A stretch of 64,000 nt of DNA from Macrostomum hystrix (taxonomy: Eukaryota; Animalia; Platyhelminthes): the NCBI GenBank assembly GCA_950097015.1, contig CATNEN010000038.1, positions 23,250,001-23,314,000 of the forward strand, in the 5' to 3' direction. Positions 2,892 through 61,443 of this stretch are shown here, one piece after another. The translations under genes were made by a program, and so were the position numbers. The notes beneath the pieces are model-generated. The model ran no database searches. It was not told the DNA's origin and saw only the letters and a program-made list of their open reading frames with translations. Numbering within the stretch: the stretch's first letter is position 1; every line of letters begins with the position of its first letter.

Positions 2892-3132
2892 CTTGAGGGC
2901 CAACCTCCAAGGCACAGCGAGAGTGTATACTGCCTGACGATGAGACAGTCAGGGCAGATCGATACACCCGTTTGCTTGCGTACGGCATCTGTGTGTGTGT
3001 GTGGGCTCACGAACCAGCGAAATTGGCAGAATTGCATCCTCGCTGCCTGCGGGTTTAGTGTCGCTAAAATGGTGTGCCATTTCCTGCAGCCCTCCTGCAA
3101 TTAGTTTAACTATTATTATTATTATTATTATT
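2892..3132 (+). mobile_element. SINE family A, 5'-truncated copy
   Basis: Matches the body and 3' part of the copy at 6052-6393 (gagggccaacctccaaggc...ctgcctgacgatgaga...gccctcctgcaatta); (ATT)n tail. Confidence 0.85.
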
Positions 3133-29499: not shown

Positions 29500-30370
29500 T
29501 TGATACGTCCTTCTACCCCATCGATAAGTCCTTCAACCCCATCGATAAGTCATTCTACCCCATCGATAAGTCCTTCAACCCCATCGATGAGTCCTTCAAC
29601 CCCATCGATAAGTCTTTCAACCCCATCGATGAGTCCTTCAACCCAATCGATAAGTCCTTCAACCCCATCGATGAGTCCTTCAACCCCATCGATGAGTCCT
29701 TCAACCCAATCGATGAGTCCTTCAACCCCATCGATGAGTCCTTCAACCCAATCGATGAGTCCTTCAACCCCATCGATGAGTCCTTCTACCCCATCGATGA
29801 GTCCTTCTACCCCATCGATGAGTCCTTCAACCCCATCGATGAGTCCTTCTACCCCATCGATGAGTCCTTCAACCCCATCGATGAGTCCTTCAACCCCATC
29901 GATGAGTCCTTCAACCCAATCGATGAGTCCTTCAACCCCATCGATGAGTCCTTCAACCCAATCGATGAGTCCTTCAACCCCATCGATGAGTCCTTCAACC
30001 CAATCGATGAGTCCTTCAACCCCATCGATGAGTCCTTCTACCCCATCGATAAGTCCCTCAACCCCATCGAAGTCCTTCTACCCCATCGATAAGTCCTTCA
30101 ACCCCATCGATAAGTCCTTCAACCCCATCGATGAGTCCTTCTACCCCATCGATAAGTCCTTCTACCCCATCGATAAGTCCTTCTACCCCATCGATAAGTC
30201 CTTCTACTCCATCGATAAGTCCTTCTACCCCATCGATGAGTCCTTCAACCCCATCCATAAGTCATTGTACCCCATTGATAAGTCCTTCAACCCCATCGAT
30301 GAATCCTTCAACCCCATCGATGAGTCCTTCAACCCCATCCATAAGTCATTGTTCCCCATTGATAAGTCTG
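29500..30370. repeat. 21-bp minisatellite (CCCCATCGATGAGTCCTTCAA)n
   Basis: Visible tandem unit; source of the spurious SPSTPSM ORF. Confidence 0.95.
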
Positions 30371-30442
30371 CTACTACGCCGATATTTCATGCTACCCCCA
30401 CAATACAACGCGGTATTTCTATAAGCCTTGCGAATGCCTTAG

Positions 30443-30562
30443 TATATCGAGGGGGTAAGCTTGATATATCGAGGGGGTAAGCTTGATATATCGAGGGGGT
30501 AAGCTTGATATATCGAGGGGGTAAGCTTGATATATCGAGGGGGTAATCTTGATTTATCGAGG
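30443..30562. repeat. 22-bp tandem repeat (TATATCGAGGGGGTAAGCTTGA) x~5
   Basis: Visible. The reverse complement resembles the 20/21-bp minisatellite unit. Confidence 0.9.
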
Positions 30563-30689
30563 AGTAGCATACATTATCGACGGGACGGTAATAAATTACG
30601 TTAAACAACTCTGCAACCCAACTCCGTGATCTCCAACATTGTCGTCCCTGATCCCAAATACTGTCGCCTCTAATCCTTGTTGTTTAATA

Positions 30690-31010: not shown

Positions 31011-31292
31011 GCTATATATATATATATATAGTTTTAAGTTTTAAAAAAATATTAGACTAGCACACTGTGCCCCCCTTGGGGGCCACTACTGTTCAGACAA
31101 AAAATATAGTGTAATGCATAAAGACAAAACCCGCTTGAAAGTTAACAAAAACGATCTTGAAAAAAATGAGCTCGCATACTTTCTGACACCAAGAAAGTGT
31201 CTACACCAAGAGCCCCATTGGGGCAGAATTACACAAGTAACTTACGTTTGATACAATTCAGCTTAATGCTACTATGGTACATGTGAATACTA

Positions 31293-31590
31293 TCCCCTCA
31301 GCAGCAGAGAACTAATGTCCCCTCAGCAGCAGAGAACTAATGTCCCTCAGCAGCAGAGAACTAATGTCCCCTCAGCAGCAGAGAACTAATGTCCCCTCAG
31401 CAGCAGAGAACTAATGTCCCCTCAGCAGCAGAGAACTAATTTCGCTTCAGCAGCAGAGAACTAATTTCGCTTCAGCAGCAGAGAACCAATTCCCCCAAGC
31501 AGCAGAGAACTAATGTCCCCTCAGCAGCAGAGGATTAATGTCCCCTCAGTAGCAAATAACCAATGTCCCCCAAGAAGCAGATAACTAATT
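31293..31590. repeat. ~25-bp tandem repeat (CCCCTCAGCAGCAGAGAACTAATGT)n
   Basis: Visible, about 12 copies, degenerating at the 3' end. Confidence 0.92.
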
Positions 31591-33399
31591 CTAAACACAT
31601 TTATAAACCTTTAAACACGTTAAAGACTTGTTGGACACATTTAGAAAATTGAGACAAGGTTTGAATGAATTTATGTTGTAGTAAGAAAGGAGTAGATGTC
31701 TCGCAAGAATTGAGTAATGTATATCGTTGAATTGAATTGAAGTCTGCTACATTTTACCTATTCAAATCAAACACACACGGGTGAGAAAAGCTGTGATGTA
31801 ATCCTGTAACCTATTTATAAATACGCACTGACTATCTTGCCAGTGTGAAAATCTTGCTTGCTTGCTTGTAATTTATTTCTCCCGAATGGCTCAACCGATT
31901 TTCACCATTTCTTCGCCAAAAGATGCCAAATATGGGGACAATTATACATGTATTTTTATTAAGCTTAAGTTCATTTCTAAGCGGATTAAATATTCGAAAA
32001 CCGGTTTTAGATAGATTTTTATTGCATTCAATCAGAGCCAGTTTTGTCAACATGCATACCACTGTCAATTTTAGTGATTGCATCGGGTCCAGTTTTGTTA
32101 AAAGTGAGCACACTGATAAGAATTTCACTGCGTCAAATGTGCATAGCTGTGTCAACCCCAAAAAGGACTAAACCTCGATAAATCATGCTACCCCCTCAAT
32201 ATTTCATGCTACCCCCTCGACAATTCATGCTTCCTCCTCGATAACTTAGGCAACCCTCCTTCTAATTGATGATAAACTTTTGATAATTCTTGTTTTCTTA
32301 ACGATAATTCATGCTTCCACCTTGATAGTTCATGCTTCCCCTTAAAAGCTCATGCTCCCCTCGATAAGTCATGATTTACCCTTAATAATTCATTCTTTTC
32401 CCTCGTCATTTCATGCTTCCCCACAACAATTCTTGCCTTCTCCGCAATAATTCATGCTACTCCTTCGATAAATCATGCTACCCTCCTTAATAAATCATTC
32501 TATCGTCTTAAAAAATTGTCTAAAAGCATTATGCTATTACCTGAAAATATCGATCATTCTTTCTCCTGGAAATCTCATGCAATCCTTTCAATAAATCAAG
32601 ATATTCCATAGATATCGAATGCTTTTCCACAAAAACTCCATGCAATTTACTTGATATATCATGCTGCTGTCCATTGATATCTAGCGCTGAATTCTTAAGT
32701 TATATGTTTGTTGTAGTGCTTCTTCTAATCTGCACTTTCCTAGTAATTCAAATACATACTGTAAGTGGTTGGCCTAAATTCCTTATATTTATTGCCTTTA
32801 GTCACTTAAAGTGACATATACATTATACCACACCCCTGCTCGGGTGGACTGATACAAACTACGAATAGTTTGGGTAGCGTGGCTCTTTGTCACGATATTT
32901 CTGGCCTTCTGCCAGTAGTATTCTAGATACTAAATCTAGTTAGTTCTGGTGATTCAGACAATACTCTCAGGTGATTCAGACAAGTTTTGTCAGGTAATTC
33001 AGGCTCTCTGGCCAGTCTGTACTCGGGCTTCCCCGGATCGGTTTTTAACGGCTTCCACTTACTTTAGAAATAAGTAAGGCATTTTGAATATGCTCACAAA
33101 GAGACTGAACTGTTTAAGCTCCAATTTAATGGCAGACCAAACGGTTAACTCCCTGTATGAAAACCCCTCAGTATACCAAAGTTCCTAATGAATATTCCCA
33201 GTGTATTTCAGTAAAGTAAAACAACGTTTATGTATAGATATTCGTAGCATATAAAAATATATAAAAGAATATTTCGCGCGCCAATTTAGTTTGGCCAATG
33301 AGGGCCCTTTACATGTTCGTATTCTAATTATTATGCTTTCAAAATACAGAAAAAACAATCATTTGCTTCCCTGCACGAAAAAACACTAAGTTTTTTAAG

Positions 33400-34880: not shown

Positions 34881-35505
34881 TTGAAATCTGCTATGCACGT
34901 CTTCCTTATTCAAATCGAATCACTCAATCAACCAAGAGAATCGTTTATAAACTCACGTACGGGTCGAAAAGCAGTGACGCAATCCTATTCAATTGAGAGT
35001 ATCGGGCCCTGTTCTGTGCTATACCAATGCACGCGCGGGCGAGAAAAAGCACCGATGCAATCTAATAAAGCTGACAGTGTCCGGCCCTATTCTAATAGAC
35101 AGAATGATGAAATTTGATCAGTCTAATCCTTGAATGAATGAAACTTTTTAGTGAAAACAGGATAAAAATTGGTCAAATGGTTCAAACGGTAGAGCGCCAC
35201 AACAGTATATATTGTTGACATGTTAACAAACTTAAGACATTAAAAACAAACTTAACACTATATCAGTCAGATAATAAAGGGAGAGTCAGACAGTGAAAGA
35301 TGGAATGAATCGAAATAAATAATTCAGCGTCGAATTCCAGTGAAGCAATTCCAATTTAGTGGCATCATTAAAATTCTCAGCGAGCCATGATGGTTTGAAC
35401 TTTGAAAAAATGGGCGAAAAATCGAGTTTTTCGAACTTTTTAATAGGCGGGTAAAGCTTGCGGCTTTAACCGCTTTTAATGTTTGAGCAATCCGCCTCGC
35501 TACCT

Positions 35506-36980
35506 GTCCTGAGAATCGTGATCAAGTTGAGGAGCTTATCCTGGACGAGCTAAAGAATAGCAGATACATGCTAGTGAAAGATAAGCCGCACATCATCAGC
35601 CCCCTGGGAGCTGTGGCCAAGTCCTCTGGTGGCCTTCGGCTGATCCACGACGCCAGCCTGCCTCGGGGCCGAAGCATCAATGAGTATTTCAAGCAGGACA
35701 AAAAGCTTCGCTTTTCGACAGTCAGCGCGTTTACTAAGAAACTGAAGCTGGGTTGGTTTATGGCAAAAATCGATCTGGCCAAAGCCTACCGCTCCTGTCC
35801 TGTAAGCTCTACGGCCTACTCAATCACAGGACTCCGGTGGACCTTCAGCGGCGAGAGTAAGCCCAGGTACCTCGTCGACACGTGCCTCGGCTTCGGGTTT
35901 GCTGCTAGCGTCAACATATTCCACCGGCTGTCGGAAGCTGTCAAGCGCATGATGGTTCGGCGAGGTCACCTAGTTATCTGCAATTATCTCGATGACTTTG
36001 CCGTTGCCGCGAACACACGGGAAGCCTGCCAGGAAGCCTATAGCACACTCCTGAATCTGCTGCGCCGCCTGGGCTTTGCAATTAACTGGGAGAAGCTATC
36101 TCCACCCAGCAAGTCCATGGTCTTTCTCGGCATCCACATCGATACGGCTGCAGGCCGCCTGACTCTCCCGCAGGAGAAACTCGAATCTTTGCAGAGTTTG
36201 CTGGACGCCGCAGCTGCCAGCAAGCGACTCAGCAAAAAGCAACTGCAAAAGCTTTGCGGAAAAATCGGTTGGTTTTGCGAGGTCGCCCGCGCTGGTAGAT
36301 CGTTACTTCGGGGCCTCATCAACCTGACCAACAGCCTAGATTTGCCTCACCACAAGATGCGCATCGAAGGTCAACTTGGTGAGCAACTGCGTTTCTGGCG
36401 ATCAGCGACAAACTGGATGCATGGAATTGAATTGTGGCCGGCCTTCTCGAACCGGCTGGTGGTTGAAACAGACGCGTGTCTGGCAGGTGGTGCTGCGGTC
36501 ATTTCTGATGGAGCTAATACCGACTGGATTTACGTGAATTGGTTAGCTGACTTCAACAGTGCTTTGCACGGTCTGCACATCAACTACCTGGAGTGTGTGA
36601 TGCCTTTGATTTTTATTATCCTGTTCAAGGAGCGCCTAGCTAACTGCCACGTTGTCTTTTACACCGACAACTCATCCGTTGCCGGGATGCTGCGCAAGGG
36701 CTCTGCCAAGCCGCCGGTGGTTCAAGCGCTGATGCGCACGGCTGTTTTACTCGCGCTAAAGCACCGCATTCACTTCGAGGTGTTTCATGTCCCTGGCCGT
36801 TATCAAATTTTTAGTGACCCAGCTTCTCGTCTGAACCACAAGCATGGACTCATTAACTTTTTATTTCGCTACTATGGCACAATCTACATCGACCCTTCTG
36901 TTATCGCATCGCACGCCCTGTCTGCTGCTTCCTGTCAATCTCTCCTTTCACAGGTTCAGCGGCTGCAGCGGAGCCCCTAA
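35506..36980 (+). CDS. DIRS/Ngaro reverse transcriptase-RNase H, N-terminally truncated (ORF track start 35568)
   Basis: KIDLAKAY, LGFGFAAS, YLDD; RNase H VETDAC / INYLE / YTDN / SDPASR. The frame stays open and homologous to element #2 upstream of the Met (PENRDQVEELILDEL). Confidence 0.92.
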
Positions 36981-37996
36981 GGACGGAACGAGACCGGCTG
37001 CTCAACCAAGCTCTGGCACCGAATACGAGACGAGCACTACGGTCCCAGCTAGCCTGCTGGGAGCGCTTCTGCAGCGACATCAGCGTGCACCCTCTAGAGG
37101 CCGATGGACCGACGGTGTCACTCTACGTATCACACCTACACCTCAAGCACCTGACCTCATTCGCCAGCTTCCCCGCCTACCTGCACGCGGTGTCGTGGCT
37201 CTACAAGCTGGCTGGGAGGACCGACCCGACTGCCCACCCTCTAGTGCGCCTTGCCCTTCAAGGCGTCAAGCGGCAGCGCGGCGCCCATGCGAGACAAAAA
37301 GCCGGTCTGACCCCCGCCATGCTGCTGCAGCTCAGGTCACACATCGACACAACATCCTGCCGCGGCGCGGCCTTCTGGTGCTGTCTGCTGGTCGGCTTCT
37401 GGGGTCTGCTGCGTGCGGACAATCTGTGCCTCTCTTCTGAATCAGCCGCCCGGAGCCCGCAGTCTTCAGCCAGGGCGGTGCGGCTGAAAGACCTGCAGCT
37501 GTGCAACAGCGGCATCGAGCTGCGAATCCGTCACAGCAAGACCATCCAGTTCGCTCAGCGTGAGCACATGGTCTGGCTGCCACGATTGCCCACCGCGAAT
37601 GGGTCTCGTCATCCGCTCTGCCCGTTCAACGCGGTCCTCCTTCACCTCAAGCTCAATAATCTCGCGGAAAACGGACTCGACTCGATCCTGTTTGCCTTTC
37701 GATCGGGCCAACGACGGGTCCCGGTATGTCGATCGCAATTTACCAGACAACTGTTTAAAGCGGCGACAGCGGCTGGCCTCGACCCGACAACAATCTCCGG
37801 GCACTCATTGCGCAGAGGCGGAGCGACATTTTTCGCCAGCTCAGGAGCATCAGTGCAAGAAGTTATGGCTTTGGGAGACTGGCGCAGCGACTCCGTGTTC
37901 CGCTACATCAAACCGGGTGATGAGGGGCGCCGGCGTGCGGTAGACGCAGCATCTGCCCACATCATCAGCTGCCACCCATACCCTCACCGCTTTTAA
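36954..37996 (+). CDS. Tyrosine recombinase of Ngaro #1 (intact frame, -1 relative to RT, overlapping the RT end)
   Basis: ALAPNTRRA..W..FC N-terminal domain; catalytic R (LLRAD), K (HSKT), HSLRRGG, GDW, RY. The frame opens after TAA 36854-36856 and has no AUG until 37319. Start is given at the predicted splice acceptor. Confidence 0.9.
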
Positions 37997-39329
37997 CTTT
38001 TATTTTTTTTTTGGCCTTGGGCCTGCGTCGCCATGTTCGTACCGCCACTTTTCTCGCCTCCGCCTCTTTGATCTGGACATTAATAGGCGGGTAAAGCTTG
38101 CGGCTTTAACCGCTTTTAATGTTTGAGCAATCCGCCTCGCTACCTTCTCTTTACCAGTCACTCTGCTCACCTAGCTGTACATCCTAGTTTGCGCTACCTT
38201 GCGTGTTTTACGTACTGAGCGTGTGCACTATCACCACCACCCCTAATTCCCGGGGCACGTGCCTACCACGTAGTTTTATTTGACAACTCTCTCAGCGTGA
38301 GAGGGTGTCGCTGCTGCTCAATTGTCAAAATTTTTCTTTCTTCTTTTTGCTTTTACCTCCGGTCGTTTTATTTCTTCGTCCAAAAATACACTGCTTAATG
38401 CTTAATCGCTTTAGGGCCTGCGTCGCCATGTTCGTACCGCCACTTTTCTCGCCTCCGCCTCTTTGATCTGGACATTAATCCCTAACAGTGGAGCAATCTC
38501 TTAGCCAGAAGCACCATACTGATTCGGGAAAATTTCTGATAGAATGGCGCAAATTTGAAGAAAATTGGTCGAAAAGTTTTTTTGTAAAACCGATTACATA
38601 CAGACAGATATTTTAATTTTTAGTATATATAAGTATATAGATTGATGGCATAGTTTGAAGATTCTGAGCTCCTATGTTTAAAGGGTTCAGTGTATCCAAT
38701 GGAAGTACAGAATTGGAAAGAATTGACAACTTTGGTGTTGTACATGACGCGAATTGTCTAATTGAGAATCCTGACTTTATCCAATTAGGAAGCGGGGCAG
38801 GTTTTATTCCTGGATGAGGATGATGGCGGTGTTAATTAGGAAGGTTATAAAAACAAAAGAAGAGATTTAATTATACTGTTGCTAACGCAGAGTATAGAAA
38901 ATTGGATATATTTGTACCGTTGAGGTTAATGAGTGGATTTTGTAACACGTTAATTAATCGATCGACTACCAATTTCAGTTAAAGTCACACGGGAGGATCG
39001 AGTTAGAGGTTTATAGGCCTACGCAGGTGCTAATCACAGAGGAATGGAGGCAAAATTATTGAGTGTAGAGTTACGCATGGAAGTCATTGAGCCAAGGACA
39101 GCTTTGAAGGTGGAATATTTGAAAGCTATTGAAACAGATGCTGAGGCTGCATATGCTGCTTATATGTGTAGGGCAGAATGCAATGAGACAAGAACTAGCA
39201 TTCGTATTAAAGAGGGATCATGTAGTAACCCAAAATATGATATAACTACTATGAGAGATGCCAACATGAGATATTCACATGGAGCTGTTAGATCAATAAA
39301 CATCTGAGTCAAAAGTATCAGACTCAATA

Positions 39330-39816
39330 TCCCATGTTTGGTGCGGATGTGTCAGCTCGAGGGATTCTCACTGATAACAGGTCCACTGATTCGCCCTGTC
39401 GCTGCGCTTGCCGCCCACCTCCGCGAGAAACAATTTTTCGAGCCTCCTTAACCACGGCATCTCCGAGCACAGTTTCTCGGGCCACAGTCGGCGCAGAGGA
39501 GAAGCCAGCGCTGCTTTCCAGAGCGGCCTCTCCGTGGACGGCATCCACTGCGATCCACTGGTGACTGGCGGTCTGACTCTGTTCTGCGATATTTCTCCGG
39601 TGGCGCGACCTTTGCGCGTAGGCGCTCCGCTGCGCAGCGGGTCGCTTGCTGACGCAGCAATTCTGTGCCTTTTTGCCCTCTCTTCTTTCCCTTTCTCCCT
39701 ACATTTTTCGGAGTTGGGATCGCCTTCCTCTCCTCGCTGCTCGCGCTTTCGCTTTCTCTTTCACCTTCTATTCGCCTTTGCCTTTGCTTTGCTACTTTGT
39801 GGGGCTGTAGGTTAAT
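39330..39816 (+). pseudogene. Decayed 3' remnant of a third YR retrotransposon
   Basis: FSGHSRRRGEASAAF..G followed after a frameshift by GDWRSDSVLRYF; pyrimidine-rich B-like tail ending in TAAT (39813-39816). Confidence 0.78.
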
Positions 39817-43759: not shown

Positions 43760-45440
43760 ATGGGAAACCGGAGGCAATTAACCAATTTTCCAAATCTAGT
43801 CTACAATAATACTACTGCCATCATGGACTATGTGAAAGCTAATCTACTAGCTAAATCACCTAGTGATAAAATGAGGCCAGAACCCAGTACCTCTAGAAGG
43901 TTCAAAACCAAAGTGGCCTCTATCACTAGCAACCATACCAACTTTCAACCGCTAAACAACCCAGACCCAAATCAAATAAAATCCGAGGAAACCAATACCG
44001 ATCTCAAAGAACCAATCCGAATAGCAGACGTCACCTGGGAACTAGCCCACTTTAGGTCGGGAGGTGCTCCGGGCCCAAACGGCATTCCCAATATTATACT
44101 CAAAAAAGGTCTCAGCCCCTCGTTGTGCTCACCAAAATCTTAGACAACTGTCTCAAAATAGGCTTCTTCCAAAAAACCTGGAAAAAATCCCACACCACGA
44201 TGCTCTATAAACCAGACAAACCCAGGAAAGACCCGCTTAGCTACAGACCCATCAGACTCACCTCCTGCATATAGGGAAAGTGTTTGAAAAAATACTGAAA
44301 AAGCGGTTGTACAAATTCTTAGAAGAAAATAACACACTTGGACATAAACAATGTGCCTACAGAGAAAAACACTGCTCGCATGACAATTTAGCCAGACTTG
44401 TCCATGACATCATGGTAGGTAAAACCAAAAACAGATCAGCTATCGGAGTTTTCTTTGTTGTGGAAGGAGCTTTTAATAAAATCTGGCATGACGCACTGCG
44501 CTATAGACTCCATAAAATCAAACTACCCACCAGACTAACCAGGAAACTATATGTCAGACCGTGAGATTGCCGTTAGAGTTAACGGTCAACTCAGTGACTA
44601 CTTCACGCCCGAGGCCGGTGTTCCCCAGGGTGGGCTACTCAGCCCAATCCTCTTCCTCATTGTGGTTGCCACAATGGCCAAACTCAAAGACATCAGAGTC
44701 AGAGCCAGTCAATTTGCTGACGACATGTCGATATGGTGCCAGTCCCTGAAAGCTAGCGTAGCTGGTAAACTCATTCAAGAGTTCATTGAAGAATACCAAA
44801 AATGGCTAAGCATATACAAGCAAGTCAATCGAAACAAGAGCAAAGCCATCGACTTCATCCACAAAACCAAAATCTTTGGATTTTGAAACAGCCTCCTCCC
44901 ATCACCTTCAACGGAACCATCATCAACTATCAACCCAACGTCAAAATCCTTGGAGTCACTCTTAATCCTCAACTCACACTCTCAGCTCACTGCTTCAACA
45001 CTATCAAAATCTGCGACGAAAGGGTTCTGCAACTACTCAGAGTTGTTCAACTCACCAAGGCCACCACTAGTTCACTCATCGCAATCTACAGAGCCTGCAT
45101 CGAAAGCATCATCACATATGCCTCACCTAATCTCACTCTACTTAGTAAATATCCATGGATTGCTGCAGGTCATACAAAATCGTGCTCTGTGTCACTGTCA
45201 TGATGCTCCTAAATACTGCAAAGCTGCCTTCCTACAAAAGCTTTTTAATGTCGAACCAATCAAAACCAGAATTGATAATCTAGCCAGTAGGTGGTACGTA
45301 CGGGCTAGTGCTAACAAAATACATGGACTAGACAGCGTCACTGATATCTCGATCACTAGCTAAAAACACTAAGATACCACTGTTCCAACAGCTCAAGAAA
45401 ATAAGCAGATAGGGAACCTACAAGCCCAGACGGTTTATTA
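43760..45440 (+). mobile_element. Decayed, 5'-truncated non-LTR retrotransposon (LINE; Jockey/I-like RT) with several frameshifts
   Basis: APGPNGIP, WKK...KP.K....SYRPI, VPQGGLLSPILF, QFADD, VKILGVTL spread across different frames. Confidence 0.9.
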
Positions 45441-45444
45441 TGCT

Positions 45445-45750
45445 GAGTGCGGCATGTGATATGGGATTGTGAGTGCGGCATGTGATATGGGATTGTGAGT
45501 GCGGCATGTGATATGGGATTGTGAGTGCAGCATGTGATATGGGATTGTGAGTGCGGCATGTGATATGGGATTGTGAGTGCAGCATGTGATATGGGATTGT
45601 GAGTGCAGCATGTGATATGGGATTGTGAGTGCAGCATGTGATATGGGATTGTGAGTGCGGCATGTGATATGGGATTGTGAGTGCAGCATGTGATATGGGA
45701 TTGTGAGTGCAGCATGTGATATGGGATTGTGAGTGCAGCATGTGATATGG
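45445..45750. repeat. 26-bp minisatellite (GAGTGCRGCATGTGATATGGGATTGT)n
   Basis: Visible, about 12 copies directly after the LINE 3' end. Confidence 0.95.
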
Positions 45751-45761
45751 TTAATTGAAAT

Positions 45762-46072
45762 TGAGACTTTATAATGGTTAATGAGTGGATGAGACTTTGA
45801 AATGGTTAATGATTGGATGAGACTTTGAAATGGCTAATGAGTGGATGAGACTTTGAAATGGTTAATGATTGGATGAGACTTTGAAATGGCTAATGAGTCG
45901 ATGAGACTTTGAAATGGCTAATGAGTGGATGAGACTTTGAAATGACTAATGAGTGGATGAGACTTTGAAACTGTTAATGAGTGGATGAGACTTTGAAATT
46001 GGTCATGAGGGGATGTGAATTTGAAGTGGTTAATGATTGGATGAGACTTTGAAGTGGTTAGTGAGTGGATTT
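45762..46072. repeat. 28-bp minisatellite (GAGACTTTGAAATGGTTAATGAGTGGAT)n
   Basis: Visible, about 11 copies. Confidence 0.93.
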
Positions 46073-46107
46073 TTGAATTTGTGATTTAAATTGAAACGAA
46101 ACATCGT

Positions 46108-46712
46108 TGTGGGAAGCAAACAGGTTAACCGCTCTGCCACCTACCCGTTGAAAGGGGAGCTTAAGGAAATCGCTGACCCAGTTTCAAAGAGACTTGTTAA
46201 TAATCAGACTCGGAATTTTGGGCCCGAAAGAAACAGTGAGAGCTGGGTGTTGTGGTTCACCTACATGTGCAGGTAGGCCTACAGCTAGGTTGGGTAAGCT
46301 GCGACTCCCCAGGTCCCCAGAGAAGCGCCGCTCTACCCGCGTCTGGAGGAATGACAGAGAGAAACAACAACAGACTCACAGTACCTCGGCTGATGCAACA
46401 GTTAGTAGCCGGTCGGTTTTATTTGCACTAAAATAGACAGTCTCGTAACAGGTGGGCAGACGAGGTTAGCAGGGTCTAATTTCCTGGGCACAACTAGCTA
46501 GGTTGGCACCACAGAACTCCGGGCTTTAGCGACAAAACAAACAGGGGGTGGGGTACGAGAGCGCACAAGGCGGGTGAGATGTACATTCAACAATTAGGGG
46601 TAGGCTGGGCGATCGATACATATGAACTGGGGTGGGGCACGCTAGCCGACTGGCGGGGCAGGGAATGAGAAAGAGATGAAAATGATAGGGCAGAGGTGAG
46701 GGCTGCGTCACA
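46108..46712 (-). mobile_element. Possible solo LTR
   Basis: 605-bp GC-elevated non-coding block with TGTG...CACA termini and a minus-strand AATAAA near 46420. No TSD found. Confidence 0.3.
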
Positions 46713-53193: not shown

Positions 53194-53583
53194 TGTATAG
53201 AATAATACCCCCTGATTTCGTTTATTTGGCCTAGGAAAGGCTGAGGACGCGTTTCTTGGCCGAGGCGAAGCCGAGGCCCAGAAGCGCAGTCCGAAGCCGT
53301 TCCTAGGCCATAGACAACGATTTCAGGGGGGTATTATAGTATTTAATCCTAAAGCTTGGCCCGGCTCACGAGATTGCAAACCTAAAACTGTTTACAGCAA
53401 CTGTGACCATAGACTATATGTTTAATCTGCCTAGGCCATTAAATGACTGGCTTAGGCCAGTTAAATAATAAATACGCAGAATTAATAGCCAATAGGCCGG
53501 GCCAAGCTGGGGATTAAATGAGATTTAGAAACATTCTCTAAATGAAACAAAGAAACGAAATCAGGGGGGTATTATTCTATACA
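53194..53583. mobile_element. Non-autonomous inverted-repeat element (MITE-like) with nested palindromes
   Basis: ~30-bp TIRs TGTATAGAATAATACCCCCTGATTTCGTTT at 53194-53223 and 53553-53583. Internal palindrome tggcctaggaa...ccgaggcgaagccgagg...ttcctaggcca. Confidence 0.8.
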
Positions 53584-53956
53584 AATAGGGCCAATTTTAT
53601 GATTTTTTAAAATTCTTTATGTCCTTTCATTTCTTATGGTTAGTTTCTTAGGGATTTGGACTTTTAGGGTTGATTATATAACATCTTTGACTTGACTTTT
53701 AATTCACAGGGTTGCAAAATTTGCCATAGCAGCTCTATTAAAAGTAAAATTGCTTTGGTTTGCATGGGTGCTTGCGCCTGTGCAAACCGGCTTTAGTGAT
53801 CAGCCCGCCCCCTTGCTGTCTCTGTGCATCTGTGTGGGGTGGGGCCGTCCCCCACCCCCGCCGCCTGCTAGCCTTTTTAGGTGAGCCTCTCACCACGTTT
53901 TCGGATTCAATTTGCGCGCAGCTCTCCGCTTGAGTTTTGATTTTTTTTGCACAATC

Positions 53957-55057
53957 ATGCCAAACTCTAACGAGCCACTTGCATCCGAAGCGCCTAGCAC
54001 TGTAAGGGCGCTACGTCAGAAGCTTCAGAGCCTAGGGCTTTCAACACAAGGCAAAAAATGTGAACTTTTACTGCGGCTGAGGGCGCACCTCGAGGGTATC
54101 GCCTCCGACTTTGAGAATGCGGACGACGAGGACGAGGAGCAAGATGAAGCTGCCGCAGTGACGACGCGTATGAGAAAAGACGGCGCAATGGTGGAGAGGC
54201 AACTGCCTTCTATCGCGAACGAGTCGGTACAACATGGTCAAGAGTCTGACGCGGCTGGCGGCCTGGACGACGAGCTGGTGGAGGCTGAGAAGCAGCTCCG
54301 ACTGCTAAAGCTACGCAAGGAGGCCGCTCTGCTTCAGGCAGAAGTCAGCCAACTTCAGCGAAGGCCTGCGACGTCAAAGAATCCCGGTGAGTTGCTCATT
54401 AACCTGTGGTCTGACGATGAAGATGCTGCCCAGCAAGAGCCCAGTCGGTTTGTAGGCAAGGTGTACCGAATCCCTGAGTTTATTAACAAGCGGAAGCAGC
54501 AGGAAGCAGGAGTTACTCAGTCCATTGACAAATCCGGAAGAGTCACCTTCAGAGTGAGGGAAGCTGTTGTTGACTCGCTGACGTTTGGAGACTGGATCTC
54601 GGCGAATGCTCGAATCATGCTGAAGCTGCTGGATGATGGCAGGTTGGTGAAGAGCGGGCTGGGCGGCCAGCCTGATGTGTCAGAGTTGCGAGACTACCTG
54701 CGCTACACTGCGCGCATTGGCGAGCTATTTGACCTCGGGTTCGACAAGGCTCGAGTTATGAGGTTTGATGACGAGTGCAGACTGAGTGAAGATGGCGAGA
54801 CGTCATGGGAGTTGCGTGGATCCGACCTTGGTCGAGTTGCCACCTACCTGATGACCCCACAGAGTGCACCGACTGCCAGAGTTGACCGGGTGCCAAAACA
54901 AAGCCTGCAGCCACCCTGCTTTGATTTCAATAAGGAAACTGGATGTTCAAGGCGGAACTGCCGTTTCGCTCATCGGTGCCGGCGTTGTGGACTTGGCCAC
55001 TCAGCGGCGATGGCGCACAGGGATGACGGTGCTGAGGTGAGCAGGCCTCTGCACTGA
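53957..55057 (+). CDS. Gag-like ORF1 (366 aa): N-terminal SAP motif, acidic linker, coiled coil, C-terminal Cys/His zinc finger
   Basis: First AUG at 53957. TVRALRQKLQSLGLSTQGKKCELLLRL fits the SAP consensus; CFDFNKETGCSRRNCRFAHRCRRCGLGH. Confidence 0.88.
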   Translation: MPNSNEPLASEAPSTVRALRQKLQSLGLSTQGKKCELLLRLRAHLEGIASDFENADDEDEEQDEAAAVTTRMRKDGAMVERQLPSIANESVQHGQESDAAGGLDDELVEAEKQLRLLKLRKEAALLQAEVSQLQRRPATSKNPGELLINLWSDDEDAAQQEPSRFVGKVYRIPEFINKRKQQEAGVTQSIDKSGRVTFRVREAVVDSLTFGDWISANARIMLKLLDDGRLVKSGLGGQPDVSELRDYLRYTARIGELFDLGFDKARVMRFDDECRLSEDGETSWELRGSDLGRVATYLMTPQSAPTARVDRVPKQSLQPPCFDFNKETGCSRRNCRFAHRCRRCGLGHSAAMAHRDDGAEVSRPLH

Positions 55058-56761
55058 CTGCGCGTCGATCCGGTTTTAACTTCCTCTGTTTTATCAACTG
55101 ACCTGAAGCTGGAGGCATGGACGGAAGAGTTGGAGTCGATCGATCTGCCGCTGGACAGAAAGCAATTTATCCTGAATGGTGTGTCGGAAGGATTTCGGAT
55201 TACGAATGTGCAGCGAGACAACCTGAAGTCTGTCGAGGTCAGCAACTATGAATCTGTGAATGTTTACGCTGAAGCTGTTCAAACGCAAATTCTGAGGGAA
55301 ATTCGCCTTGACCGCTACCGTCGGTGCTCGGATGGGTGGCGGCCTCGGATTGTGAGTGCGCTGGGAGCCTTGCCGAAGGATGACGGCCGGGTACGTCTAA
55401 TTCACGATTGCAGTCGGCCGGACAATCTGTCGGTGAACGCGCACTGGGAGAGCAATGAGAAGTTGCGGTTTTCAAGCGCTGAAAACTTCGCAAGTAAGTT
55501 AACGAGAGGCTGCTATATGACTAAAGTTGACCTGAGTGAAGCATACCGCGCATGTGGAGTGCACCCAGAAGACTTCGTCAACACCGGTCTCAAGTTCAAG
55601 TTTCCTGGCTGCGCCACTCCCACCTACATGTTCGATACACGCCTGCCGTTCGGGGCGGCAGCCTCGGTCACGTGCTTTCAGCGCCTGAGCAATGCGATTC
55701 ATCTGATGATGGTGCGCAGAGGCTTCATCAACACCGAGTCTTACCTGGACGACTTTGCCTACTGCGGGACGCAGGAGAACTGCCAGCGCTTCTACGTCGA
55801 TCTGATTTACTTGCTGACTCGGCTGGGATTCACCGTCAACCCGGCCAAGTGTCAGCCGCCGGCGCAGCGGATGTCATTCCTTGGAATTGAGTTCGACACT
55901 GTGGAAGGAATCAAGAAGCTGCCGGATGAGAAGGCGAGGAAGTTGATCAACCTGGTTGGTGCCGAGTTAGCCAAGGTGAGGATTAGTCAGCGGGCCCTCC
56001 AACAGGTCATTGGCAAGTTGGGGTGGGCAGCGCAGGTCATCAGTTGCGGAAGGACCTTCTTGCGTGAGCTGATTGAGCGGTGCAACACCTTACGGCGTGG
56101 ACAGCGAACGCTGGTCGACTCCGGGTTACGCAGTCAGCTGAACTGGTGGAAGGTGGCGTTGCAGGCGTGCCGATGGGTGCAGCTGTGGCCGAGCTACAAT
56201 CGAGTTGTGGCGATGGAATCCGATGCGTGCGGCAGAGGTGGTGCGGCGTTGCTGCGTGACCAGGATGGTCTGTTTGACTGGTGCTACCTGGACTGGGAGA
56301 AGGATGCAGGATCAGCCTTCGCGAACCTGCCGATCAACTACAAGGAAGCGTTGGTCCCTCTGCTGGCAGTGATGAGGTGGAGGGATGTGCTCAAAGGTTG
56401 CAAGGTGAGCATCTACTGCGACAACCAGACGGCCTGTCACATCATCAACAAAGGCGTTTCAAAGTGTCCTGCGTTGCAGCGGCTGCTGCAGACGGTGGCC
56501 CTGATGTGTTTGCGCTTTGGAATGAGCATTCGCGCGTTTCATGTGCCTGGTGATTTTCAAATTTTTGCGGACGCTGCCTCGCGGTTGCATGAGCGAGGCC
56601 AGCTTTTAAACTTTTTACTCCGCTTGTATGGTTTTATATGCCCAAGCATTCTACAATCACTGTATCAGCATGCTTTTGGCTTGGCGACCGCCTCCTTTCT
56701 TCATTTTCAGGCCGCCCAGCTGCGTCAGACTCTCTTAGCAGCAGCGCCACATCGCTGCTGA
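55058..56761 (+). CDS. RT-RNase H of Ngaro #2, in frame with gag behind a single UGA
   Basis: KVDLSEAY, LPFGAAAS, YLDD; RNase H MESDACG / INYKEA / YCDN / ADAASR. The frame is open from 55058. Confidence 0.93.
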   Translation: MRVDPVLTSSVLSTDLKLEAWTEELESIDLPLDRKQFILNGVSEGFRITNVQRDNLKSVEVSNYESVNVYAEAVQTQILREIRLDRYRRCSDGWRPRIVSALGALPKDDGRVRLIHDCSRPDNLSVNAHWESNEKLRFSSAENFASKLTRGCYMTKVDLSEAYRACGVHPEDFVNTGLKFKFPGCATPTYMFDTRLPFGAAASVTCFQRLSNAIHLMMVRRGFINTESYLDDFAYCGTQENCQRFYVDLIYLLTRLGFTVNPAKCQPPAQRMSFLGIEFDTVEGIKKLPDEKARKLINLVGAELAKVRISQRALQQVIGKLGWAAQVISCGRTFLRELIERCNTLRRGQRTLVDSGLRSQLNWWKVALQACRWVQLWPSYNRVVAMESDACGRGGAALLRDQDGLFDWCYLDWEKDAGSAFANLPINYKEALVPLLAVMRWRDVLKGCKVSIYCDNQTACHIINKGVSKCPALQRLLQTVALMCLRFGMSIRAFHVPGDFQIFADAASRLHERGQLLNFLLRLYGFICPSILQSLYQHAFGLATASFLHFQAAQLRQTLLAAAPHRC

Positions 56762-57695
56762 GCGCTGCGTACGCACCGAGGTCGGCGCAGGCAGTCAACA
56801 GACACGTCCGTGAGTGGCGGGAGTTCTGCCGCCATACCGGCTGCGATCCAGTGTCCGGCAACGTCACGAGCCTGTTGAACTATTTGGCCAGTCTGATCGG
56901 CACACGGCTACATGCCTACAGCAGCATCTCGGCAGTCTACAGCTCTCTGTCGCTCTGGTTCCGAATTAACTCGTCGCCGGACCTAACTAAGCACGCTTCC
57001 GCGGTTCTTCTCCTTCGCGGCGCTAAACGAGTCCTCGGACTGCGCGTGAACCGAAAGCGGCCTGTGTCGCCTACAATGCTGACGGAGATGCGACGACTAG
57101 TTGACGAGACCGACAGGCTGCAGCTGGCCTGCTGGGCTGTGACCATCTGCTGCTGGTGGGGAATGCTGCGAAAGTCCAGCTTTCTGCCACGAACTGGCAA
57201 GGGCCCGGCCCTTTCCCGGCGCGCCGACCTGCTTCAGCATCCGAAGGGTCTGGTGTTGCGCTGCGAGTTCGGCAAGACCATCCAGTTCAAGGAGCGCAGC
57301 CACCTGGTACTGCTGCCGAGATTGGCGCGGCAGCGTGCGCTGTGCCCGGTTGCGCAGTCGAGCGACACATCCGCGCCAACGAATTGAAGTCAGCAGAGTC
57401 ACCACTCTGGTCCTACGCCGACGGAAGTGGCGGCTTGCGCCTGCTGACTGGGAGGCACCTGGACTGCTTCCTCCGTGACAAGTTTGCCGCAGTCGGCGTT
57501 CGACCAGAATCTTACTCCGCGCACAGCCTGCGACGAGGAGGAGCTACCGGGGCGTCTGTGCTGGGCCTCCCAGTGGCTGATATCATGCGCATTGGTGACT
57601 GGAGAAGTGAAGCTGTGCAGCGTTATCTCCCCCGGTTTCACCAGACAGCGGAGGCTGCTGTGACTTTTGCCCGCGGTGTCTCTGCTTTGTTTTAG
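56711..57695 (+). CDS. Tyrosine recombinase of Ngaro #2 with an apparent 1-nt deletion at about 57353
   Basis: AYAPRS..V...W..FC, MLRKS, FGKT and LCPV in one frame; AVERH, HSLRRGGA, GDWRS and QRY in the next. Aligns with the YR of element #1. Confidence 0.88.
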
Positions 57696-58859
57696 CTCCC
57701 AGCCTTCTGCTTTTGTTCGCTTGCTCGCTTTGGGGTTTGGAGGTCGCTTTTTCGCTGTGCGCCTCCCGCGCGTTGCTCGCCTTGCTCGCCAATTGTCCCG
57801 TTGTGTCTCTTTGTGTCTGGCTGGTCACTAATGCTTTGGTTTGCATGGGTGCTTGCGCCTGTGCAAACCGGCTTTAGTGATCAGCCCGCCCCCTTGCTGT
57901 CTCTGTGCATCTGTGTGGGGTGGGGCCGTCCCCCACCCCCGCCGCCTGCTAGCCTTTTTAGGTGAGCCTCTCACCACGTTTTCGGATTCAATTTGCGCGC
58001 AGCTCTCCGCTTGAGTTTTTTTTTAATTCAATTTCTGCTTTTAACTCGAATACAAATATTACCTTTTTCAATTCTTTGTAACCCGTTAAAAAAATACAAA
58101 GCTTGGAGGTCGCTTTTTCGCTGTGCGCCTCCCGCGCGTTGCTCGCCTTGCTCGCCAATTGTCCCGTTGTGTCTCTTTGTGTCTGGCTGGTCACTAATTT
58201 ATTTTTTAACGCTTTTAAATTAACGGTTTTTAATTTACGCTGGAACCTTAGCTTTTTCTGAAATTATCGGCCTTTGTCGTTAAAACGATAACTTTCTTTT
58301 AAATGTAACTTCAACGGATCGATGTTTAATCCGATAAAAATAAAGTTAACGATGCCCAACACTGGATTTGCTGGATTAGCAGAAACTGCTTCGTGTAGTT
58401 TTGGAATGGGCCATGCCACAAATGTCACATGCCACCGTAACACTGCTACAGATATAGAGGAGATGCCGATTGCGGGCGGACTACGCAAGTTGCATCGTTA
58501 CTGAATGAAATGCGACATCATCAGTCGAGCCACCTGCTATCCGCTTACTGATATTTCCCAGTGGGTTATTACTGAAAAACTAAATGCCAGCCGCTATGCA
58601 AAAAAAAATTTAGCACCGAAAAGTGGATTTACAATATCATTTCCCCCAGTCCCCAATAAAATAGCTCGAGGGTCTCTAGCGCGATTTCCACCGGGTGGGA
58701 GCTACATGCACTCGCATTATCTGTCGTATATAATGTGAGAGGATTTCAGTTGATCAAAGCATCGATTTCCCAGAGAATTTCATCGGATAATACTTTGACT
58801 TTGCTTTGATTACGCACAATTATTCGCATGTAAGTAATATTTCAGCATCTCTGACTGGT

Positions 58860-59056: not shown

Positions 59057-59400
59057 GGGGGTCAGTGGCAGAGCGGCCTCTCGCACCAAGGTCCGTGGGC
59101 TCGATTCCGCGGCGAGGCCACATTCATTTAGGGCGCAGACGCGGAGAGAAGGCTTGGGGGGCTTGGGGGCTTGTCGTGCAATTTACGCCCTTTAGGGTCA
59201 ACCTCCAAGGCACAGTGAAGTGTACACTGCCTGATGATGAGAAAATCAGGGCTGATGTGCACACCTGTGTGAGCGTGTGCCTGTGTACAGTATCTGTGCG
59301 TGTGGTGCTCAGGAGTCAGCGAAATGGGCAGACTTCTACTGTCACAAAATTTTTTGTGTAATTGCCCGCAAAACACCTGCAATTATTATTATATTATTAT
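59057..59400 (+). mobile_element. SINE family A copy
   Basis: Head and body match 6052-6393 with small indels; ATT tail. Confidence 0.85.
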
Positions 59401-59712
59401 AAGCCGTCTCTACATGACAGCGTCCCAAAAGAATGCACTGACTATTGTGCGAAAGTCGAATGCGTCACTTATCATTCATACATCGCCACATATCATGTGG
59501 GACATATGGGAAGGTTTGATAGGTTGAGAGATGGACACATCATTTGATTTCCCGAAATTTCTATTGGAAAACGATCAAGAATAACATATTGAAAATCTGG
59601 CCTGGTTTGTTTTAGAACATTGCGAAGTTTTAGTACATTGCGAACACAACATAGACACGCAAGCCTCATAAAAGTTTCCTTGTACGTAATCTTGGAATTT
59701 CAGAATCTACGA

Positions 59713-61443
59713 ATGCCATCGACAATTAACGAGGCCATCGCCTCAAGCACGGCTCACGGCATCAGCAGGGCAGCGGCCACCGAGGCCAAACCGCTCAGAG
59801 TGATGTGGATTCTGCTCTTCGCCACCTTCCTCGCTCTGTTTCTCAAGAGCGGTATCAGACTGGTGCAAAAGCTGCGCGAGAACAAACTCGCAAAATTCTA
59901 CTTTTTGGATGAGGCACCGTTTGTCTTACCTGATCTGTACTTCTGTCCCAACAATCCGTATTCAGGTAGCTATCCGTTTATGCTGAACAAAGAGGACGCT
60001 GATTTGATTAATTCTAAAGTTTCTAGTCTGGTGGAGCGGATGGAAGAAGTTCTTGGAAAACCTCCCGGCACATCTGAAGCAGTGGCCCGTTTAGTCGCTG
60101 TGCAGCTGGGCCTTCCGTTTCATCTTCTACAGAAACACCTGGTGCTGAGAAGCGAACAGTCGGTATTAAAAGCAGAACTAACACGTCGTTGGCACTCGGC
60201 AAAAAGTGAACCAAATGATGTTTTCTTCAGTACGTTTTACACACCGGAAAATGTGTTGTGCTTCAAGGCGGTGCTCGATGAATATAGGAAGGAAATAATG
60301 CTGAATCAAGACAGAATATTAGAGGTGTGGCTTTCTACTGATCCTTATTTTGCCGACTTCAACTTTACTGGACATCGGATTCAAGATATTGGAAATGTTT
60401 CCTTTCTGAGCTGGCACCCCACAAATATTATAGATTATCTGAAGGTTTCAGGCTACACAATGCTAATTGTACCTCCTGGAGCCTACCCCGCAGTGCCATT
60501 CGAGACTAATTTTCTCCTAGCCCCCGGCAATGCATACTTGGTGCAGCTGACGATGGAGGAGCAAATCTGCAGCCAAGAGCTGCACATGACCCACTGTTTG
60601 AATAATCATCCGGAAGTGAACTTCTCAAGTCCTCTGACTGGCGAGCATGAAATATTTAATTACAGCTACGCAGCTTGCTATTATCTAGAAAATCACGCCA
60701 TCTATGCTAAAGAAGCCGGCTGTCGGCCGCCCTGGTCCCCAACGCCAGCTGATTATGCGCGTTTGCCCCGTTGCCTGAACTTTTCTGAGATGAACAGCTC
60801 TGGAATACAGCCAGCTCTAAAACTGCTGGAAAATAACAAAGACATTGAAGACATCACCCTCAACCTTTGCAGGAATAAAAGGCCATGCTCTTACCCCATT
60901 TACAACGCTCGCTATTCGTTTGGTAAATGGCCCAGCATTGGTAGTTCTACAGATTTCTACTTTGCCAACGCTTCGGTTATGGATTCAGCTGCTACACCGG
61001 CTCTGGCTAAATTGGTGACGATTGCGCAACAAATACAAGGCACAAGTCACTCGGCACACCTTGAAGGCCTGTTTCGTTCCTATGTGTCTGAGGCTTTGAT
61101 CCGTGTAAGAATTTCAACTGCGTCTTCACTGTCGCCCCAAGTCATGCTCGCCTATTCTTATTCGCTGAATGACTTTCTCGCTGACACAGGAGGTCTGTTG
61201 GGCCTGTACATCGGCTGCAGTGTGCTGACGCTGTTCGAGTTTCTCGAACTAATCTATCTTGTCGTTGAGAATTCCGTCAGGAAGCGAAGGTCTGCAGGGA
61301 CTGATCAATCGGCCTCTGTTGAAGCACCGGTGGTGCCTGCAGTTCCAGGTCATGATTTGGTCGCGAATGAACTTCAGGAAGGTCAGAACGAAGCCACTTC
61401 GAAGTACAGAGGAGTCGATGCAATGGAATCTGTGGAGGCTTGA
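59713..61443 (+). CDS. DEG/ENaC (amiloride-sensitive sodium channel superfamily) subunit, intronless, 576 aa
   Basis: STAHG (HG motif), TM1 VMWILLFATFLALFL, LPDLYFCPNNPY, Cys-rich ectodomain, TM2 signature FLADTGGLLGLYIGCSVLTLFEFLE. Acceptor-like tttcag ends at 59703, 10 nt before the AUG. Confidence 0.92.
   Translation: MPSTINEAIASSTAHGISRAAATEAKPLRVMWILLFATFLALFLKSGIRLVQKLRENKLAKFYFLDEAPFVLPDLYFCPNNPYSGSYPFMLNKEDADLINSKVSSLVERMEEVLGKPPGTSEAVARLVAVQLGLPFHLLQKHLVLRSEQSVLKAELTRRWHSAKSEPNDVFFSTFYTPENVLCFKAVLDEYRKEIMLNQDRILEVWLSTDPYFADFNFTGHRIQDIGNVSFLSWHPTNIIDYLKVSGYTMLIVPPGAYPAVPFETNFLLAPGNAYLVQLTMEEQICSQELHMTHCLNNHPEVNFSSPLTGEHEIFNYSYAACYYLENHAIYAKEAGCRPPWSPTPADYARLPRCLNFSEMNSSGIQPALKLLENNKDIEDITLNLCRNKRPCSYPIYNARYSFGKWPSIGSSTDFYFANASVMDSAATPALAKLVTIAQQIQGTSHSAHLEGLFRSYVSEALIRVRISTASSLSPQVMLAYSYSLNDFLADTGGLLGLYIGCSVLTLFEFLELIYLVVENSVRKRRSAGTDQSASVEAPVVPAVPGHDLVANELQEGQNEATSKYRGVDAMESVEA

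Follow-up and report, generated by a model that had tools for sequence, protein, structure and literature searches.

The Ngaro group of the DIRS order of retrotransposons is said to go back to work by Goodwin and Poulter in 2004. Its members combine a gag-like open reading frame (ORF), a reverse transcriptase (RT) with RNase H, and a tyrosine recombinase (YR) whose ORF overlaps RT in another frame; they have no methyltransferase, and their repeats are arranged as A1...B1 A2 B2 (PMC3783388, PMC9210276). The same papers describe the ORFs just as overlapping or frameshifted, and in the YR-retrotransposon literature that we searched in full text (the primary reviews lie outside that scope) there was no proposal of splicing for YR expression, or of any route of YR translation. 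How YR is translated from an overlapping, often ATG-less ORF is left open in that literature, a question that a conserved splice, if true, would answer. Here we analyze a 64,000-nucleotide stretch of the flatworm Macrostomum hystrix (assembly GCA_950097015.1, contig CATNEN010000038.1, positions 23,250,001 to 23,314,000, forward strand; this whole stretch is called the window). It holds two divergent Ngaro elements, and in the complete one, element 2 (53751-58198), a spliced message joining the N-terminal part of Gag to the recombinase (GagN-YR) is probably the best explanation for YR expression.

Spliced subgenomic RNAs are known from other retroelements, among them the gag RNA of Drosophila copia, RNAs of plant Ty1/Copia elements and the spliced pol mRNA of foamy viruses. 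In avian leukosis and Rous sarcoma viruses, a donor lies a few codons into gag, such that env begins at the gag AUG. The arrangement proposed here resembles this retroviral env mRNA in having its acceptor in the 3' end of pol and its donor in gag, in starting the downstream protein at the gag AUG, and in leaving the unspliced RNA as genome and gag-pol message. It differs in that about 143 Gag codons with folded modules (a SAP domain and a long helix) would be donated instead of six, and the product would be an integration enzyme rather than an envelope protein. Splicing in long terminal repeat retrotransposons and foamy viruses likewise draws on one transcript and sets a protein ratio, but it yields Gag alone or Pol alone, whereas here a chimera of Gag N-terminus and recombinase would arise in a YR element. 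Programmed -1 frameshifting, as for gag-pol or pol, also reads a downstream ORF in the -1 frame across an overlap, and a UUUAAAC heptamer is found in one copy family here; however, neither the heptamer nor the frame relation is conserved across the clade, and stops intervene. Relative to the Ngaro elements already described, the differences are the conserved acceptor, the phase-matched donor that we propose to go with it, and a SAP domain in the Gag of the families studied here. To our knowledge, no export element is known for such a spliced Ngaro message.

Both elements in the window are Ngaro-type (DIRS order) tyrosine-recombinase retrotransposons. RVT_1 is recognized in both, along with a weak RT_RNaseH match, as in DIRS-type RT and RNase H. 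In place of a DDE integrase there is a tyrosine recombinase, recognizable by a Phage_integrase match in element 1, by thousands of YR homologues and by the motif HSLRRGGAT, which is invariant in two alignments. The repeats of both elements are split direct repeats of the form A1...B1 A2 B2 instead of inverted repeats with an internal complementary region. No Pfam match to a methyltransferase domain was found downstream of RNase H in the RT frame, whose tail ends about 35 residues past an NFL.R.YG motif.

Element 2 reads, on the plus strand, as A1, gag, RT/RNase H, YR in the -1 frame (to 57695), B1, A2 and B2. The A1 terminal repeat (53751-53943) is the same as A2 (direct repeat D7, 193 nt, 99% identical). 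The gag ORF (53957-55057; 366 codons and a TGA in the ORF list) encodes in order a SAP domain, an acidic linker, a long helix, a gag core and a CCCH-like zinc knuckle. The SAP domain spans residues 15-46 (53999-54094; Pfam E 1.5e-7), and the long helix is confidently predicted at residues 102-135 (54260-54361). The RT/RNase H frame (55058-56761; RVT_1 E 5e-11, with the weak RT_RNaseH match) follows in frame with gag behind the single TGA. Beyond YR, the split direct repeats occupy 57737-58198, with B1 at 57737-57832, A2 at 57832-58024 and B2 at 58103-58198 (repeats D7 and D8). The genome contains several copies of element 2 that are 99-100% identical, as well as many other Ngaro families. In the window copy, the YR frame is disrupted near 57350, at a point where one more base is present in sister copies and in other strains; the break had already been noticed in an earlier reading of the sequence alone.

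The predicted splice would join two phase-1 sites. Its 5' splice site, CCG/GTGAGT (54384-54392, the slash marking the exon boundary), is read directly from the sequence inside the codon of Gly-144, in phase 1, eight residues after the long helix. The predicted 3' splice site is a pyrimidine tract with CAG (56688-56710) within the last conserved codons of the RT tail (..SFLHFQ). It reads cctcctttcttcattttcag/gc, where the AG is at 56709-56710 and the exon starts at 56711; two nucleotides precede the first full YR codon, which makes it phase 1. The coding part of predicted exon 1 (53957-54386) comprises Gag residues 1-143 and the first base of codon 144, and thereby the SAP domain and the long helix. 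Predicted exon 2 (56711-57695) consists of a linker of about 20 codons and the tyrosine recombinase with its HSLRRGGAT motif. The intervening 2324-nt intron (54387-56710), inferred from the donor and the acceptor, would cut out the gag core along with the zinc knuckle and stop codon of gag, as well as RT/RNase H in full, and its length leaves a remainder of 2 on division by 3, restoring the YR frame. In intact sister copies, the fused product amounts to 143 codons, the split codon and 327 codons, or 471 amino acids. The donor after the coiled coil, the intron and the fusion of about 471 residues had all been put forward in the sequence-only reading, and each agrees with our own reading of the letters. 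The splice sites thus give an open fused frame, and both the sites and their phase are conserved in divergent relatives, the acceptor broadly and the donor in fewer cases.

Element 1 (35440-38479, plus strand) is a divergent Ngaro element from which gag has been lost. Directly after its A1 repeat (35440-35505) comes RT-coding sequence in which about 95 codons are missing from the start of the RT frame as it stands in element 2; this 5'-truncated RT/RNase H frame extends to 36980 (ATG-started ORF 35568-36980; RVT_1 E 2e-14). A predicted 3' splice site (36933-36953; ..ctctcctttcacag/gt) lies at the homologous position of the RT tail. In full it reads caatctctcctttcacag/gt, its AG is at 36952-36953 and its exon starts at 36954, again with two nucleotides before the first full YR codon. 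The YR exon (36954-37996; Phage_integrase E 1e-7) is intact. Its frame opens after a TAA at 36854-36856 and has its first ATG only at 37319, so the earlier statements that this frame holds no AUG between 36854 and 37319, and that both acceptors (56710 and 36953) are phase 1 for YR, are correct. The element closes with B1 at 38019-38084, A2 at 38080-38145 and B2 at 38414-38479 (38019-38479; repeats D9 and D10). A 99% identical sibling on C11 has gag upstream, but element 1 itself is without gag and therefore gives no donor comparison.

The acceptor is clearly beyond chance. Scored with a simple position-weight matrix (PWM), which was used for all splice sites, 56710 reaches 10.3 against 4.5 for the next best and ranks first among the 267 AGs of element 2; 36953 ranks first among the 142 AGs of element 1. 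Within the genome we compared at least seven divergent families, with nine distinct junction sequences including subfamilies and with YR 33-41% identical to that of element 1. In these families, a pyrimidine tract followed by CAG/G or CAG/A sits exactly where RT-frame conservation ends, in phase 1 for YR. The RT-frame tail closes in pyrimidine-rich codons and CAG at a fixed distance from NFL.R.YG, and the YR core motif begins 20-22 codons after the acceptor, in the other frame. The site ranks first in five of the seven other family representatives, and the acceptor of element 2 is kept in its relatives L010 and L026.

The same signal recurs in metagenomes, where 80 related loci were reduced to 47 lineages at less than 60% YR amino acid identity. 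In 21 of the 47 lineages, no AG on the contig outscores the best one found in the 170 nt preceding the YR core; windows shifted as controls give 1-3. A score of at least 5 is reached in 27 lineages, of which 26 are phase 1 (two bases before the first YR codon), while the phases in the control windows are about even. The frame relation of RT to YR varies among these lineages (-1 in 11, +1 in 5 and 0 in 4), and the RT stop falls 30-109 nt short of the tract in 8 of 18, which leaves the tract in a non-coding spacer. Because RT can end before the tract and the frame relation is variable, RT coding cannot explain the acceptor signal. Judged from its sequence distribution, the acceptor is a deeply conserved signal, and the survey of families for an acceptor and phase at the YR start, suggested in the sequence-only reading, thus found both widely.

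The donor of element 2 is weaker evidence by rank. Its PWM score of 6.3 is third among 219 GT sites, five of which score at least 5.6. No other strong donor before the gag stop is in phase 1. The site is kept in the sister copies L001, L002, L003, L006 and L008, while L004 has a T at position -1. Its hexamer GTGAGT also starts three ALDH introns of the window (4927, 6521 and 8312), as had been pointed out before, and the 6521 intron shares the full 9-mer CCG/GTGAGT (6519-6527). A second donor, GAG/GTGAGC at 55036/55037, is phase 0, as first read. In family L011, whose Gag is 29% identical, GTG/GTAAGT stands in phase 1 at Gly-124, about five codons or less from the aligned position, and the resulting exon 1 of 123 codons carries SAP. 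Among metagenomic elements, we counted donors in 13 independent ones with a good acceptor and enough upstream sequence, accepting sites that score at least 4 and close an ATG-started frame of at least 60 codons. There are nine phase-1 candidates in seven loci, three in phase 0 and none in phase 2. The phase-1 candidates lie at codons 95-325 from the ATG, and each of the seven loci has one at codons 95-169. By our own estimate the binomial probability of this phase bias is about 0.004, the candidates not being fully independent.

An apparently intron-less copy, belonging to a sister family, occurs at C1:3359349-3360662, where one open frame of 450 codons holds SAP (Pfam; C1:3359349-3359450) and YR (C1:3359724-3360662) in the same frame, and genome searches gave no gag-core and no RT match at this locus. 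In a full-length, near-identical sibling (C39:9544532-9548249), SAP at 9544532 and YR from 9547311 are 2779 nt apart, in different frames, with RT at 9545905-9547281 between them. Relative to this sibling, the C1 copy lacks about 2404 nt (remainder 1 on division by 3), starting by arithmetic near gag codon 124. At the level of architecture, the missing segment is what reverse transcription of a spliced message would leave. In the family of element 2 itself, we found no processed (intron-less) copy and no copy that breaks at the donor or acceptor; the 80 metagenome loci yielded no intron-less copy either.

Protein models of the same design exist in public collections. A profile search of 1.84 billion proteins recovered YR homologues with 130-190 extra N-terminal residues. 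GagN-YR models include XP_050388701.2 of Patella vulgata (452 aa), XP_019639177.1 and XP_078682739.1 of Branchiostoma (482 and 503 aa; several loci) and XP_077986280.1 of Glandiceps (502 aa). In the Patella model, residues 2-55 align with an Ngaro gag N-terminus (E 5e-8), and residues 128 onward match the YR exon of locus L118 from the third residue of that exon (E 1e-76), with no RT between. The closest public relative of element 2 is A0A1I8G0Z6 of Macrostomum lignano, named "SAP domain-containing protein", which is 37% identical in the gag part and 45% in the YR part. As far as can be read from its sequence, it enters YR at the homologous G/R.PA position, the YR alignment itself starting about 15 residues later. 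This model omits a stretch that matches the gag/RT TGA region of element 2. A word-index search with YR returned ORF-style calls of 189-396 aa only, and the Gag N-terminus had no match in the public protein collection, from which the genome's own proteins are apparently absent.

Taken together, acceptor conservation, recurring donors, the C1 copy and the public models support the SAP-coiled coil-YR fusion by splicing that was originally suggested. In the mechanism we propose, full-length RNA would serve as genome and as message for Gag, and Gag-RT/RNase H would probably be made by passage of the single in-frame UGA. A fraction of the RNA would be spliced from the phase-1 donor at 54386, after the SAP/long-helix module, to the phase-1 acceptor where the RT tail ends, with the exon beginning at 56711; in the family of element 2, splicing would use exactly these two positions. 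This would take out the gag core and all of RT/RNase H and leave a message of about 2 kb, which would be read from the gag AUG into SAP, helix, linker and recombinase, the last residue being number 471 in intact sister copies. The recombinase ORF, which has no conserved start codon, would then be translated because its message starts at the gag AUG. In the fused enzyme, the SAP domain may act as a DNA tether and the coiled coil as an oligomerization handle.

Several observations weigh against this proposal. Taken on its own, the donor at 54386 is within chance expectation, and a donor is readable in just two families of this genome, those of element 2 and L011. The sequence-only reading suggested surveying related families for a phase-1 donor; one occurs in L011 and in 7 of the 13 metagenomic elements, but the other six have no donor scoring at least 4. 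The C1 copy, known from match positions and frames, may be a frame-preserving internal deletion. The RefSeq and UniProt GagN-YR entries are computational models, and that of M. lignano uses other donors, entering YR through the homologous acceptor from gag plus some 100 residues of RT. In addition, when contigs of four public runs (whether RNA or DNA is not on record) were compared with window positions 53400-58400, none contained the joint 54386^56711. The donor is crossed unspliced by record 4 of run X1 and record 10 of run X16 (53938-57766), and the acceptor by record 7 of X1. The contigs of X16 total about 50 Mb and leave the unique 3' flank uncovered; their makeup suggests an RNA run, and if it is one, the unspliced form dominates there. 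Since contigs drop rare forms, the four runs neither prove nor refute a minor spliced species. RNA-Seq and Iso-Seq data have been published for M. hystrix (PMC10468722).

Among the other explanations, the one that fares best accepts the acceptor and joins it to a different 5' exon, supplied either by another donor in the element or by trans-splicing of a flatworm spliced leader. We regard it as unlikely, though it has some points in its favor. The M. lignano model reaches the homologous acceptor from other donors, element 2 has four further GT sites scoring at least 5.6, and the 3' end of the M. lignano spliced leader, followed by its donor, occurs in the genome in 19 exact copies (leader sequence from PMC8629364). 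However, every other strong donor ahead of the gag stop is in phase 0. The terminal AUG of the leader would likewise be in phase 0 at 56711, that is, in the RT frame, where it opens only the 17-codon RT tail; as an initiator for YR it is out of frame and was rejected. The published 35-nt leader (PMC8629364), the last 16 nt of which are confirmed in this genome, has no AUG in the YR phase. Moreover, phyla that lack such a spliced leader show the phase-1 constraint as well, and the C1 copy has SAP in frame with YR.

The leader 3' end with its donor (..TTGCATG/GTAAG) is found on C15, C17 and C42 (for example, C17:2760-2780) at a spacing of about 11.6 kb, which points to spliced-leader RNA genes inside a long tandem repeat unit.

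It is considerably less probable that YR is translated alone from unspliced RNA, starting at the AUG at 56638 or at a non-AUG codon after internal entry or reinitiation. In element 2 this AUG precedes the acceptor by 24 codons and shares the YR frame. However, two long ORFs and some 2.7 kb separate it from the 5' end, it is GTG or missing in the relatives L009, L010 and L026, and an equivalent is missing in element 1 and the other families. As it is not conserved, initiation at 56638 was rejected. Among the 47 metagenomic lineages, 30 show an open YR frame without any ATG ahead of the YR match, which also speaks against such a start.

An RT-YR fusion produced by -1 ribosomal frameshifting in the RT/YR overlap appears very improbable. 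In its favor, the genome families with a readable junction have YR at -1 relative to RT, and in element 2 a heptamer U_UUA_AAC stands in the RT frame at about 56603-56609, directly past the opening of the YR frame. Yet this heptamer is missing in L010 and L026, which are 77-78% identical, and in element 1, where a TAA in the YR frame takes its place. The UUUAAAC is restricted to the subfamily of element 2, and no slippery site in the common RT/YR overlap is shared among families; frameshifting at 56603-56609 was rejected on these grounds. The variable frame relation in metagenomic lineages and the RT stops that precede the acceptor further imply that an RT frameshift cannot be the general route to YR. 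Two loci with RT and YR in one frame were also set aside as shifts peculiar to single copies, which skip the conserved tail or come after it, namely the 916-codon open frame of L038, in which a frame shift skips the conserved RT tail, and the same-frame RT-YR of L039. The sequence-only reading had named the AUG at 56638 and -1 frameshifting as the routes that would speak against splicing; both the AUG and the UUUAAAC are missing in relatives 77-85% identical, which disfavors them alike.

Finally, the least probable explanation is that none of this has a function. The donor would then be a chance GTGAGT, and the pyrimidine tract with CAG would be a by-product of the RT tail, which is hydrophobic and conserved (..[FL]x[FLS]Q). 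In its favor, the tract in this genome does encode conserved residues of the RT frame, always 25-26 residues away from the YG motif, and by our own estimate about one GTRAGT per element is expected by chance. It is hard to reconcile with a phase-1 tract that persists in the non-coding spacer past the RT stop, with encoded residues that change (F, L, S or H) without loss of pyrimidine content, with control windows that lack the signal, or with the intron-less SAP and YR copy on C1.

The spliced GagN-YR message may reach well beyond this species. We lean, with less assurance than for element 2 itself, toward the view that it is ancestral and clade-wide in Ngaro elements of flatworms, molluscs, amphioxus, hemichordates and others. 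The phase-1 intron would then have persisted over hundreds of millions of years, and the DNA-binding, oligomerizing head derived from Gag would be a working part of the enzyme. If true, the splice would set the ratio of Gag to recombinase, and it predicts a chimeric enzyme that binds DNA through a SAP head and carries a helical handle. It would also explain "uncharacterized" animal gene models of the GagN-YR type and non-autonomous intron-less copies, and would improve the annotation of these elements.

At the junction of gag and RT, the two frames of element 2 are continuous apart from the TGA at 55055-55057 (..PLH-stop-LRVDPVL..), and Gag-Pol may be made by readthrough of this stop. Removal of the gag UGA by a small in-frame intron (55037-55108) was considered and rejected: the AG of that intron scores below 1.8, outside the six best acceptors of the element, and no such joint was seen in the contigs. 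In a copy of another Ngaro family (C7:8654557-8657355), gag and RT form one open frame of 1256 codons, while its sisters have a gag of 398-415 and an RT of 818-866 codons.

Other features were noted around the two elements. About 0.9 kb downstream of element 1, an open frame on the plus strand (39408-39815) has a degenerate YR C-terminal motif (..SGHSRRRGEASAAF..) and is probably the remnant of a third YR element. Directly downstream of element 2 is an unbroken ORF of 607 codons (59620-61443, plus strand), which by eye we take to resemble a degenerin/ENaC-type channel. A repeat of about 300 nt is interspersed at 6040-6345, 59057-59335, 8958-9227 (minus strand) and 2892-3065, in copies 77-82% identical, two of them in ALDH introns; ARAGORN called no tRNA in these copies. 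The window also contains four minisatellite arrays, at 5200-5790 (unit of about 17 nt by eye, in an ALDH intron), 30007-30584 (21/22 nt), 31263-31610 (25 nt) and 45366-46126 (26/28 nt).

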